From Orbicella franksi (lineage: Eukaryota), in contig OZ116698.1 of assembly GCA_964199315.1 (NCBI GenBank), forward strand, positions 9,796,001-9,860,000: DNA of 64,000 nt. Direction: 5' to 3'. A program made the position numbers and the translations under genes. Positions 16,423 to 64,000 of the stretch are shown here, piece by piece. Below the pieces are notes generated by a model. The model saw only the letters and a program-made list of their open reading frames with translations, searched no databases and was not told where the DNA came from. Numbering within the stretch: the stretch's first letter is position 1; each line of letters begins with the position of its first letter.

Positions 16423-17489
16423 TTATCTTCTAGGTTTTTCGGAACAACTTAAAGCTGACAACATGCCGCACAATTGTCTTCGCTTCTTTTTTAAATTACC
16501 TTTGCCAAAAAAATTACGTTTCTGGGCTACGACTCTCTTCCCTGGTTTTCTTCTGTGAAGAATTTTACTCCGTCTCGCGAGGCCTCCATTATCCAAACGC
16601 GACACACGTGCACTCTTTGGCTTTGCCACACAGCATTCACGTGAGCAAGCCTTGGTGCAATGCCGAGAACAAATGACTGGACACGGGGAGGAGGAAGCAG
16701 TTGGAGTTGATATTAGTGGGGACAGAGAGATTGGGGGAGGCTGGACAGCACTTGACGATTCTTTCTGATCATGTTGATGAAGATGAGTGTCTGGTGTTAC
16801 CGGTGTCAGCGACTTTGCAACATTTTGATGATGATCCCTTGCACTTGCTAGGCGTCTAAGATTGTCCAATACGGATCTGTCGCAGCAGTGAATTGGGCAT
16901 GTACTTGCACACCTAGATCTACATACCGCAGGGCACACTGTCGGCCAGGGTTGCTGTTGTGGCTGAAAATATGGTGGTGGTGGTGGTTGCATGTAGTACG
17001 CTGGTGGAGCTGGTGCAGGGGGTGGGACATAAAAACGTGTTGCCGGTAACGAAGCAAATTTGGTGCAGCATGCGACGGGGCAGGAGCCCATGCATACGGT
17101 GTTACAAACTGCGGGACATGTTGCAGGTGGTCCTGACGCCACTGGGTAGGTCGAGGGCGGTCCTGGAACAACATAAGGTGGAGGGGGTGGAGGGTAAGGA
17201 GCAGAAATGTATATTGGAGGAAGGGGTGGAGGAGGTGGAGGTGGAGGCGGAGGCGGAGGTGGTAGAGGGGCAGGGGCGGGAGGAGGGTTTTGAATAACTG
17301 GCAGAGGAAGGACGCAACATTCATCAGGACAGGTTGGCTTGCAAGAATGCGCACAGTACGAGGGACAGGAGCTCGTTGAGGTACAACAATGGGCTGGACA
17401 CGAGTCGTCACACTGTGATTGACAGTTGCCAGGGCAGGGTACATTGACGTGGAAATGAATGCTTTCTGTTGGCTTTGGTTCGGCCGCAA
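16423..17489 (-). CDS. Gene A terminal exon: five minicollagen-type CRDs, polyproline, basic tail
   Basis: CPGNCQSQCDDSCPAHCC, CPSYCAHSCKPTCPDECC, CPAVCNTVCMGSCPVACC, CPAVCRSRCASTCPIHCC, CPVICSRHCTKACSRECC. Confidence 0.9.
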
Positions 17490-61438: not shown

Positions 61439-64000
61439 TCAGATTTCGAGATTAGTAGCAATTGTGGTAAAAATTTGTATTCGACACATACTAAATTTAC
61501 AGATGATGGAACCTTTGCCTAACGTATTATGTTCAAATTTGAAATGTTGACCACCTTGCCGAGCAGTATTCTGGATTGGTTGTTTAATGCTTCCCATTCC
61601 GCTCTGTCTTCTACAGCATTCTTTGGAACACCTCAATGAGCACACTTTTTTACAGTTATCTGGACATGGTAAGTTAGAGCGGATCATAATGTTCGGTAAT
61701 GAAGGTGGATGTGAATCTATAACAGGAACCGTGCGCGGCCCAGGCATCCTCAAGTAATTGCCAGCAATTAAACTCTTCATCACAGCTTGTGCCATAGGTC
61801 TGTATCTTTTAATCGCTTCCTTGCAGCATTGAAGAGGGCAGTTAACACTGCAACTATGATAACAGTTAGTCGGACACGGTAGGCTAACAGAGTATGACAG
61901 TGTGCCACGGTTAACTCCTCGCTGTGTACTTGTACAACAGTCCGCTGGACAGGAACTAACACACATGCTGTAGCAGACCTGTGGGCAGTACGTTGGAGCA
62001 GGAGGCGGACTGGGGACGTAGAGCGAGGGAGGGGAAGCATTACAACAGCGGACAGGGCAGTCTGGGTGGCAGACCTTGGAACAGAGAGCTGGACATGACG
62101 GAGAGGTCTGCTGCAATTCAGATGGTTGCTGAACCTGTTGCAAATGAAGAGAAAGGGTTGGTTCTTTAAAGCAGACGATCGAGAGGAGGTTATTAAAACT
62201 TTGAACGTCCAGTCAACTCTAGGTGCTAACAAAAACAGAACTGAAATGTGTGTGGATCTGGATCTGAAACCCACTTCTAATTTTTGTTAGGTAGAAACAT
62301 AATCATAAAAGCAGTTTGAGTTCTGCTTCATTATGTCAGAGAATGAAATATTTAACGGTTTGAGTAAAATTGCAATTATTACCTGAGGTACCCGAGGAAG
62401 CTGAGGTACTTGGGCAGGTTGGCTTTGCCCACTTGTTTTGCTCATTGGGCCTTTAACACAGCAGTAGTCAGGACACGTGTCGACACACTTACCGTCACAG
62501 TCAGAGTGACATGGTGCAAAGGCAATGTTGGGTTGAGGCACCGAGCCAGGAGCATCACCTTTTAACCGATAAAAGGAAATGAAAAATGCAAGGATAGTTA
62601 ACATTTGATTCATGCTTTAGCGTGCATCATCGAGCTCTGATGCACATGAAAATTTTGGAGAGCATCAAAGAAACAGAAGTGTACTCCAGCTCTTTCAGTC
62701 CTCTCTAAACTTCTCAAGTGCATCTTAACTCGATAATACACACTAAAAGCATGAAGCAATTGATTTTTACTTTTGTATTGGACGTAAATTTCTCTGACGA
62801 AGCGACATTAACTTTTCCCACGTCATGAGCGTTCGCCATGGATTATGCCTTAGTTCTTAGTGCGCAATTTGTCTTCCGTTCCGATACCTTAACCTATAAC
62901 CTAAGAGATAGTGACTGTTCGCTTGCCATTCCACAGCCCCGCACTAATTATTGTAAAAGAAGTCTGTCCTACAGCGGAGCTGTACTGTGGAATAGTTTTA
63001 TTTTGCTTTTATACACGGCTTACTTGTAAAGCAGGTTTTTTTCATTTCTTTTATGGCAGTAGTTATTAGTGATTTATTAGTTAGGTAGTCAGATTAATTT
63101 AATTTAATATTGTTAAGTCCTGAAGGAAATACCGTGTCTAAATAAAGATTTTACCTTACCTTACCTTACTGGCGCTTACGTGTGCTGTGTTTGAAAGCTA
63201 GCGCCGCTTTGCTAGCTATGTCATAATAACCTTTCTTTGAAATTGTCTTTGACAGAGCGACAGTTAATAGAGTTGATTGGACATGGAGAGTTTCGTATGT
63301 AAAAAGAAATCAAAACTTTTCATTAATTTGCCCAAAGTAAATTAAAGCGTTTTAGGAAATTATGGAAGAAAAATGCATTTTTCTCACCTCCACAATAACC
63401 CCACAGCTTGTCCACGTCATAGTTGTAAGTAGTGGCACACCAGGGCCTGGTACCGTCTTGAGTTGTACAAGTGGTGTACATTTTACCGCCATATATGAAT
63501 GGAAAATGGCAGCAGTTGCCATTTGAATTGCCGCCGTAGCACAAAAAGCAACTGGAACAGAATCCCCATTGCTTATCAGCGTCATAATTAGTAGTTGTTG
63601 CGCACCAGCGATAGCCTCGTTCGGCTCTAGTACAGCGGTGTTGCGGGTTTCCTTGGTAGATGAACGGAAAAATGCAACAAGCGCCTTTTGAGGTCCCTCC
63701 ATGGGTTGGCATGCAACCTGTATGTTGAGATTTACGAGAAGCATTGAATTTTGTATTTTAGGAGTCTAAATTGAATCTATGTGACTTTGTGAAGAAACAA
63801 ACTTACCTTGAATTGTCACTGACCCTGAAATCAATGCAAAGTTATTAGAATTTAAAATGTTTTATTTGTACCTTTCAATGATTAAACAAATGAACATCTT
63901 TCAAGATGACAAAATGCTACTCACCAGTAAGTGTAGGAAGCGTTGTTATTGGAGGAAGTGTTGGTAAAGTAACCGATACAATCGGTGGAGGCGTACTTTT
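61439..64000 (-). CDS. Gene C (3' part; close paralogue of gene B): Pro/Thr linker + 2x FN2 + 5x CRD
   Basis: Exons >64000-63925 (SVTLPTLPPITTLPTLTG, cf. gene B SVTLPTLPPIPTLPLVPG), 63824-63807 (18-nt micro-exon), 63717-63388, 62558-62383, 62134-61439. Confidence 0.88.
62870..63170 (+). mobile_element. 3' fragment of a non-LTR retrotransposon (CR1/L2-like)
   Basis: YNLRDSDCSLAIPQPRTNYCKRSLSYSGAVLWNS, then AATAAA-like text and a (TTACC)n tail. Lies in a gene C intron. Confidence 0.72.

Follow-up and report, generated by a model that had tools for sequence, protein, structure and literature searches.

Three genes arranged in tandem in the coral Orbicella franksi, here called A, B and C, encode large secreted-type mosaic proteins that each end in two FN2 domains and five cysteine-rich domains (CRDs) of the minicollagen type. 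They lie in a window of 64,000 nt (contig OZ116698.1 of assembly GCA_964199315.1, positions 9,796,001-9,860,000). Coordinates below are window positions, "window+" and "ext" marking sequence past its end, and all three genes and the features relevant to the finding are on the minus strand throughout. Cnidocysts are the defining novelty of Cnidaria, and in their walls minicollagens, NOWA, cnidoin and CPP-1 are polymerised through disulfide links. We propose, with moderate confidence, that A, B and C are tandem paralogs of hexacorallian secreted, non-collagenous matrix proteins of the cnidocyst (nematocyst and/or spirocyst) built on a NOWA-like logic. Their architecture varies an established class, the cnidocyst proteins that bear CRDs but no collagen.

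A shared FN2 and CRD tail

The pattern CX3CX3CX3CX3CC defines the CRDs of minicollagens, NOWA and cnidoin, in which it serves as a disulfide-reshuffling polymerisation motif (PMC4863159, PMC4321713). A six-frame regular-expression search retrieved exactly 15 strict copies in the window, all on the minus strand, with five at the 3' end of each gene, behind a polyproline exon and two FN2 domains. They are located at 17436-16630 in A, at 39273-39220 (one) and 38475-38092 (four) in B, and at 62511-62458 (one) and 62095-61613 (four) in C. The strict motif was absent from 200 mononucleotide shuffles of the window and from the 40 kb beyond the window end. With numbering assumed to start at the first cysteine, residue 14 is proline in 13 of the 15 CRDs, and residue 4 is valine, isoleucine or leucine in six (two per gene), together with Pro14. 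Substitutions to Val/Ile at position 4 and to Pro at position 14 favour the multivalent C-CRD fold (PMC4863159).

The FN2 domains have the four cysteines and the conserved aromatic residues of the family, were also checked by regular expression, and match Pfam PF00040 at E values of 1e-15 to 4.5e-35 (57.9-119.8 bits against a gathering cut-off of 22.2), significantly in all three genes. They occupy two single-domain exons in A and one two-domain exon each in B and C. Pfam searches of the window exons detected no Peptidase_M10, hemopexin or FN1/FN3, and those of the window exons and the Nematostella homologues detected no SCP and no CTLD. There is no collagen helix: B and C contain no Gly-X-Y run of at least five, and the sole such run is the proline-free (Gly-Thr-Ala)x7 within the poly-Gly/Ala block of A. 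A preliminary description of this DNA, which had noted three co-oriented genes ending in two FN2 domains and five CRDs after a Pro-rich stretch and lacking a collagen helix, was therefore accurate on both points.

The silk-like block of A (27939-28500, in exon 2) consists of poly-Gly, (Gly-Ala)n and (Gly-Thr-Ala)7 and is found in this paralog only; at the corresponding site, B and C have a Ser/Thr/Gly/Gln-rich block instead.

Gene models, head domains and transcripts

Models for the three genes were assembled from paralog conservation and splice phase. Gene A has 10 exons (1265 aa), gene B 16 (1495 aa) and gene C 15 (1440 aa), the last with intron phases identical to those of B; all three are stop-free, and every junction is GT-AG. 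From the N- to the C-terminus, the modules are a signal peptide, a PA14-like domain (B and C only), a Gly zipper, a low-complexity block, a beta-trefoil, a small beta-sandwich, a polyproline stretch (~150 aa in A, 290 in C and 405 in B), the FN2 pair and the CRD pentad. The first exons are Met-initiated, hydrophobic and mutually homologous, with start codons at 33513 (A), 58357 (B) and window+12162 (C), and are predicted, without a dedicated predictor, to encode signal peptides. The preliminary description had credited A and B with signal peptides, a Gly zipper and carbohydrate-binding-type modules. The first exons, the zipper (also present in C) and the trefoil bear this out, while the PA14 assignment is weak and A lacks that domain.

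In correction of the preliminary description, gene C has its first exon 12.2 kb past the window end. Nor is the cluster limited to three genes. Upstream of C, at ext 76200-103800, are two FN2-less paralogs, also on the minus strand: D (window+17 to +25 kb), with PA14, Gly zipper, trefoil, sandwich and polyproline, and E (window+34 to +40 kb), with PA14, trefoil, sandwich and polyproline; by tblastn, the Gly zipper was found in D and not in E. Each carries one variant CRD, CX3CX5-6CX3CX3CC (ext 78570-78511 and 96067-96005). As this is the type found in an alternative terminal exon of A, we count five members in the cluster.

At the DNA level, B and C share the exons alone, and their introns have diverged. 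The ratio of nonsynonymous to synonymous divergence (dN/dS) between them stays within 0.13-0.29 for the exons that encode PA14, trefoil, sandwich, FN2x2, CRD1 and CRD2-4; A, B and C are under purifying selection. In a separate observation, synonymous divergence (dS) between B and C was 0.37-0.49 in the FN2 exons (39603-39932 vs 63388-63717; 37484-37658 vs 60750-60924) and 0.7-1.7 in the other exons, a difference suggestive of gene conversion or of an additional constraint on FN2 at the nucleotide level.

The three genes are transcribed and spliced. For A, the polyA libraries were X3, X5 and X6. One 1278-nt polyA RNA contig splices 19068-18897, 18523-18353 and 17489-16584 at GT..AG sites, thereby uniting both FN2 domains and the five CRDs; the joint between the FN2 domains was recovered in all three runs and that between the second FN2 and the CRD exon in X3 only. 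In B, one X3 contig (22 letters on the short side, depth 3.5) supports a polyproline-microexon-FN2 splice through the joint 39931->40955 between the FN2 exon and the microexon. X1 contigs on B retain introns, so part of that coverage is DNA or pre-mRNA.

Transcripts also show a second 3' end in A. RNA contigs run continuously over 21428-19151 and are joined to the mini-exon, and the unplaced RNA letters past 19068 are the same as those past 21428, both matching the end of the mini-exon (22430-22389). These identical loose ends indicate two alternative 3' ends, both in frame, and the isoform with the variant CRD and coiled coil is 1309 aa long. In B and C, a third FN2 exon behind the stop codon is probably an alternative terminal exon. 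Its two copies are 88% identical (dN/dS 0.17), its phase-1 acceptor is conserved and agrees in phase with the donors of the FN2x2 and polyproline exons, and an Acropora model (P0175, see below) ends in a homologue of it after only two CRDs. We rejected an assignment of this exon to the following gene as its opening coding exon, since it sits upstream of the signal-peptide exon there, no copy is present upstream of C, and its acceptor is phase 1. An unspliced X3 contig (37400-38372) extends from the last exon of B through the third FN2 exon.

Whether the heads and tails belong to single genes needs consideration, since the lectin heads and the polyproline-FN2-CRD tails could be separate adjacent genes fused by the models. 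No coral RNA joint between the head exons, which end in the sandwich, and the polyproline exon was seen, the X1 contigs contain introns, and the junction between exons 1 and 2 of A scores weakly, so that an exon may be missing there. Set against this, all head-to-tail junctions are GT-AG and phase-compatible and give single stop-free reading frames of 1265-1495 aa in three paralogs, the polyproline exons begin at acceptors and have neither a start codon nor a signal peptide of their own, and Nematostella RefSeq and Acropora models place heads and tails on one protein. We consider such an artefact hardly credible. The assembly gap in B does not alter the model: its flanking exons (45629-45427 and 43890-43683) join in frame at phase 0 and correspond to consecutive exons of the gap-free C and to one fused exon of A, which by homology argues against a hidden exon. 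An (ATAGCA)14 hexanucleotide microsatellite adjoins the gap.

Among the head domains, the trefoil is likely, from profile comparisons, a member of the CBM42/AbfB family. A profile built from the trefoil exons of the five local paralogs and of Nematostella matched CBM42/AbfB-type structures in the PDB (9fnk, 3kmv, 3akf and 9nxi) at E 1.8e-4 to 8.8e-4, with interleukin-18 trefoils next. Single sequences scored 21.0 bits (B) and 14.6 bits (A) with Pfam PF05270 against a cut-off of 22.8, and the same family is precomputed on the Acropora P0175 protein. The N-terminal head domain of B and C, spread over three exons in B, is probably PA14. In the homologous region of a Nematostella protein (P0075), PA14 (PF07691) reached 19.6 bits, under its cut-off of 24; the top PDB profile matches of the PA14 region were the adhesins Epa1, Epa6, Flo1 and Flo5, at weak E values of 0.04-0.9, and its AF2 model (pLDDT 47) was too poor for use.

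The 87-aa two-cysteine domain gave an AF2 model of a seven-strand sandwich with pLDDT 94.8. All top 50 Foldseek matches were pVHL, and VIA returned Z 9.0 to VHL (root-mean-square deviation 2.5 A over 79 residues), the next fold being at 6.6. The best match among AFDB clusters was a Nematostella FN2 protein, A7SM84 (TM 0.92), two further uncharacterised proteins followed at TM 0.72-0.77, and a protein atlas look-up of this domain gave no lead. Judged from the predicted structure, the domain would resemble the pVHL beta domain in fold only. The pVHL beta domain binds hydroxyproline, and for the coral proteins we treat this link as a lead only. A complex prediction with three copies of the Gly-zipper exon of B scored 0.04, which gives no verdict for or against oligomerisation.

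Table 1. Positions of the coding features of genes A, B and C and of the assembly gap in the window
Feature	Position	Strand	Evidence
A, exon 1: start codon, signal-peptide-like hydrophobic N-terminus, then basic stretch	33408..33513	-	homology to first exons of B and C
A, Gly-zipper helix, then ~210 aa of poly-Gly/Ala low complexity including (Gly-Thr-Ala)x7	27939..28841	-	
A, CBM42/AbfB-like beta-trefoil (27673-27416, 26303-25950) and Pro-rich linker	25950..27673	-	Pfam AbfB E 0.037; family profile
A, 87-aa two-cysteine beta-sandwich, pVHL-beta-like fold	25232..25501	-	AF2, Foldseek, VIA
A, polyproline exon, ~150 aa	23429..23884	-	
A, 42-nt mini-exon, donor common to both 3' ends	22389..22430	-	loose ends of RNA contigs
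A, alternative terminal exon: one variant CRD (CX3CX6CX3CX3CC), coiled-coil region, acidic tail	19887..21427	-	RNA contigs
A, FN2 domain 1	18897..19067	-	Pfam fn2 E 3.3e-17; RNA joint 18523->18897
A, FN2 domain 2	18353..18523	-	Pfam fn2 E 1.5e-17; RNA joints on both sides
A, terminal exon: five CRDs, Pro-rich spacers, basic tail, stop codon	16423..17489	-	regular expression; RNA contig 16584-17489 joined to FN2 domain 2
B, exon 1: predicted signal peptide	58276..58357	-	homologous first exons
B, probable PA14, three exons (56459-56235, 54532-54421, 53557-53373)	53373..56459	-	homology to Nematostella P0075 region with weak Pfam PA14
B, Gly-zipper exon	52108..52349	-	conserved in C, A, Nematostella P0166 and Acropora P0175
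B, Ser/Thr/Gly/Gln-rich exon	51254..51590	-	
B, CBM42/AbfB-like beta-trefoil (49241-49123, 48371-48227, 47873-47526) and Thr/Pro linker	47526..49241	-	Pfam AbfB E 3.9e-4; PDB profile
B, VHL-beta-like sandwich, two exons (45629-45427, 43890-43683)	43683..45629	-	alignment; phase-0 GT-AG junction
Assembly N gap, intronic in B	44921..45050	.	
B, polyproline rod, ~405 aa, 55% Pro over residues 727-1134	41738..42952	-	
B, 18-nt phase-preserving microexon between polyproline and FN2	40956..40973	-	splice sites; RNA joint
B, FN2x2, one exon	39603..39932	-	Pfam fn2 E 4.5e-35, two stretches
B, CRD1 exon	39154..39320	-	
B, CRD2-5 terminal exon and stop codon	37963..38514	-	
Third FN2 exon behind B stop codon, phase-1 acceptor	37484..37658	-	Pfam fn2 E 1e-15
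C, polyproline exon, 3' end; heads and predicted signal peptide up to 12.2 kb past the window	63925..64000	-	
C, FN2x2	63388..63717	-	90% aa identity to B
C, CRD1 exon	62383..62558	-	
C, CRD2-5 terminal exon and stop codon	61439..62134	-	
Third FN2 exon behind C stop codon, phase-1 acceptor	60750..60924	-	homologous to B copy

Three further observations concern the locus. Short basic stretches stand directly behind the signal peptides, RRQR in B (56400-56459) and DKR in C (window+10.5 kb), possible sites of propeptide cleavage comparable to the Lys-Arg sites of nematocyst proteins (PMC4321713). A repeated element in a B intron (38546-39118), with a similar ORF-like stretch at 47354-47500, reaches an RNA contig depth of thousands, compared to ~10-30 on exons, and is probably a transcribed dispersed repeat. 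On the plus strand, a neighbouring gene (6542-12859) contains a discoidin/fucolectin-like exon, identified by eye, and long uncharged Gln/Gly/Met/Asn repeats; its composition resembles the Gly/Gln/Met-rich elastic core of cnidoin (PMC4321713), and no CRD was seen in it.

Relatives in other cnidarians and proposed placement in the cnidocyst

To find relatives, the FN2x2 exon of B was used as a HMMER query against 1.84 billion representatives. The best 150 matches, which were the ones examined, were mostly multi-FN2 proteins, and CRDs were found in two of them, P0075 and P0112. The first is Nematostella XP_048587434 (isoform XP_048587433, P0151), which comprises a signal peptide, trefoil, sandwich, PA14, Pro/Cys-rich region, two FN2 domains and three CRDs. 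A second Nematostella protein, XP_001625147.3 (P0166, reached through the P0075 cluster), has a signal peptide, Gly zipper, sandwich, polyproline, two FN2 domains and one CRD; its locus contained no further CRD exon. Both XP_048587434 and XP_001625147.3 are labelled "uncharacterized" in NCBI. In Acropora cervicornis, P0175 combines Gly zipper, trefoil, sandwich, polyproline, two FN2 domains, two CRDs and a terminal third FN2. It is automatically annotated as "Matrix metalloproteinase-9", and its precomputed Pfam domains are AbfB and fn2 only; we regard the name as a mis-annotation caused by FN2 similarity. Further relatives came from Oculina patagonica and several Logan/ENA fragments. The Logan contig P0112 joins FN2, FN2 and CRDx5 yet retains the upstream intron, and so gives partial support only.

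Relatives were found in Nematostella, Acropora and Oculina, which extends the family across Actiniaria and Scleractinia. The order of head, rod, FN2 pair and CRDs recurs in the independent models XP_001625147.3, XP_048587433/4 and P0175, in support of the cnidocyst reading. The number of CRDs is 1, 2, 3 or 5 across the family, so the earlier count of exactly five holds for coral A, B and C and not for the Nematostella relatives. Word-index searches yielded few relatives and no named minicollagens. Two candidates, P0167 and P0168, were discarded as unrelated multi-FN2 proteins, as was NvProFnt, an unrelated FN3 protein. Full-text literature searches found no paper text describing FN2 combined with CRDs, and neither these nor NCBI labels revealed a named or characterised family with the lectin head-polyproline-FN2-CRD architecture, in agreement with the first impression that no named family was recognisable.

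Indirect support for a putative cnidocyte role of the coral proteins comes from Nematostella. An eLife supplement lists NvPFnt (NV2.24348, PA14+FN2) among the cnidocyte-expressed extracellular matrix (ECM) genes as cnidaria-specific, and NvFnt-1 (NV2.24355) is likewise catalogued there as a cnidaria-specific ECM protein expressed in cnidocytes. NvPFnt stands in an alphabetical block that also holds the NOWAs, TSR-2/3 and vWFA proteins, and its values are near zero in the non-cnidocyte states shown (stem/germline and neuroglandular). For both proteins, the eLife main text and its annotation and expression tables give name and class only, with no mention of CRDs found, and the supplements of three cnidocyte single-cell papers had no entry for NV2.24348, NV2.24355 or FN2. 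The family is, then, catalogued yet uncharacterised in Nematostella.

Several points weigh against a cnidocyst role for the coral proteins. The eLife authors class NvPFnt under "Other / adhesive proteins" and NvFnt-1 under "Adhesome / receptor proteins", not as cnidocyst components, and NvFnt-1 appears in a different block of the cnidocyte ECM list. NV2.24348 is probably the NCBI relative, an identification made by shared domain description only and not by sequence, and NV2.24355 is likewise matched to its NCBI protein by domain description only. The PA14 domain scores under the Pfam threshold and yielded no usable AF2 model, reads on B are almost absent from the raw polyA runs X23 and X24, and no coral RNA joint from heads to polyproline was seen, as stated above. 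CRDs are not strictly restricted to cnidocysts either, for one is noted by Tursch et al. in a mesoglea collagen (PMC4863159). Finally, FN2-minicollagen binding, lectin-glycan binding and thread adhesion are putative.

Some of these points would also suit adhesive or matrix proteins secreted by cells other than cnidocytes (mucus/gland, epidermal adhesion, mesoglea or calicoblastic matrix), with CRDs as general cross-linkers and FN2 acting on fibrillar collagen. This fits the adhesive and receptor classes of the eLife supplement, the mesoglea collagen with a minicollagen CRD, and the role of FN2 as a binder of ECM collagen in other animals. It fits less well with the position of NvPFnt beside the NOWAs in the cnidocyte list and its near-zero values in the other states shown, with the lack of mesoglea mass-spectrometry values in the NvPFnt rows, and with the fact that multi-CRD strings are otherwise known from cnidocyst proteins (NOWA, minicollagens and cnidoin). 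We judge this reading unlikely, if still deserving of attention. Less credence still is due to soluble secreted proteins, lectins or agglutinins with an immune or prey-binding role, whose CRD disulfides would make oligomers outside any organelle wall. Two lectin-type head domains, alternative 3' ends without the CRD pentad and RNA from whole-holobiont libraries would all be compatible with it. Nevertheless, the combination of a 150-400-aa polyproline rod and five CRDs typifies structural proteins of the cnidocyst (minicollagen flanks, CPP-1), and the Nematostella relative stands in a block of capsule-building genes.

If A, B and C are cnidocyst matrix proteins, as we favour, the protein would enter the post-Golgi cnidocyst vesicle, where the CRD pentad would reshuffle its disulfides into the minicollagen/NOWA polymer and anchor the C-terminus covalently in the wall or tubule. 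The FN2 pair may hold collagen-like or polyproline-II partners, minicollagen for instance, by non-covalent docking, and the stiff polyproline rod would keep the lectin heads off the polymer, free to bind glycans of the capsule matrix or of a target surface. The firmness of cross-linking could be tuned by the alternative terminal exons (variant CRD and coiled coil in A, third FN2 in B and C), which give versions that lack some or all canonical CRDs. Of the cross-linker role suggested in the preliminary description, what stands is expressed secreted-type mosaics with CRDs, an FN2 pair, a polyproline rod and lectin-type heads.

A more speculative extension, which we consider distinctly doubtful, is that these proteins organise the cnidocyst wall in a switchable way: the VHL-beta-like domain and the FN2 pair would read (hydroxy)proline-rich or collagen-like partners, and the choice of terminal exon (CRDx5, variant CRD with coiled coil, or third FN2) would set a covalent lock vs an exchangeable attachment. 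If true, splicing would act as a valve on cross-linking and thereby set the mechanics of the wall or thread, or how sticky spirocyst threads are.

The family brings the motif for polymerisation onto one chain with a classical module for binding collagen and two domains of lectin type, and bears on how non-collagen partners find and orient on the capsule polymer and on what makes spirocyst threads adhesive. It is conserved from sea anemones to stony corals and is present in the genetically tractable Nematostella. Testable hypotheses open up on the binding of minicollagen by FN2, on incorporation through the CRDs, on the specificity for glycans and on switching between isoforms, and the database names "Matrix metalloproteinase-9" and "zonadhesin" are corrected for genes of this family.

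Comparison with known systems

True family members are also present in Nematostella, LOC116607202 and LOC5504218, which share the trefoil, the VHL-like sandwich, PA14 or Gly zipper, the Pro-rich region, the FN2 pair and the CRD tail. They differ in having one or three CRDs, not five, and LOC116607202 also has a different order of head domains. Canonical FN2 domains are shared with MMP-2/MMP-9 and fibronectin, while the coral proteins lack peptidase M10, hemopexin and FN1/FN3. The two-cysteine domain has the same 7-strand sandwich as the pVHL beta domain, at ~10% identity; unlike pVHL, it has no alpha domain, and it is extracellular with a conserved cysteine pair.

Minicollagens have a central triple helix of ~12-16 Gly-X-Y repeats flanked by polyproline and by CRDs at the N- and C-termini. 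With these and with CPP-1 (cnidarian proline-rich protein 1), the coral proteins share CX3CX3CX3CX3CC CRDs beside polyproline. CPP-1 is a collagen-free polyproline protein of the capsule wall (PMC6910907). The coral proteins are 5-10 times larger than minicollagens and CPP-1, carry CRDs at the C-terminus only, add FN2 and lectin-type domains and, unlike minicollagens, have no Gly-X-Y triple helix. Cnidoin, a Gly/Gln/Met/Cys-rich elastic repeat with one CRD at each end (PMC4321713), is similar in bearing CRDs on a non-collagen body, and the silk-like poly-Gly/Ala block of gene A adds to the likeness, but cnidoin lacks FN2, lectin domains and a polyproline rod.

A system with a comparable build is NOWA, known from Hydra and with four copies in Nematostella, which is likewise secreted and non-collagenous and has a lectin-type domain together with several minicollagen-type CRDs strung along its C-terminus. 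It is a glycoprotein of the cnidocyst wall whose CRDs enter the disulfide-linked minicollagen polymer. NOWA contains SCP and C-type lectin domains and eight CRDs, whereas the coral proteins have PA14, a CBM42-like trefoil and a VHL-like sandwich as heads, and behind these an extended polyproline rod, the FN2 pair and the CRD pentad.

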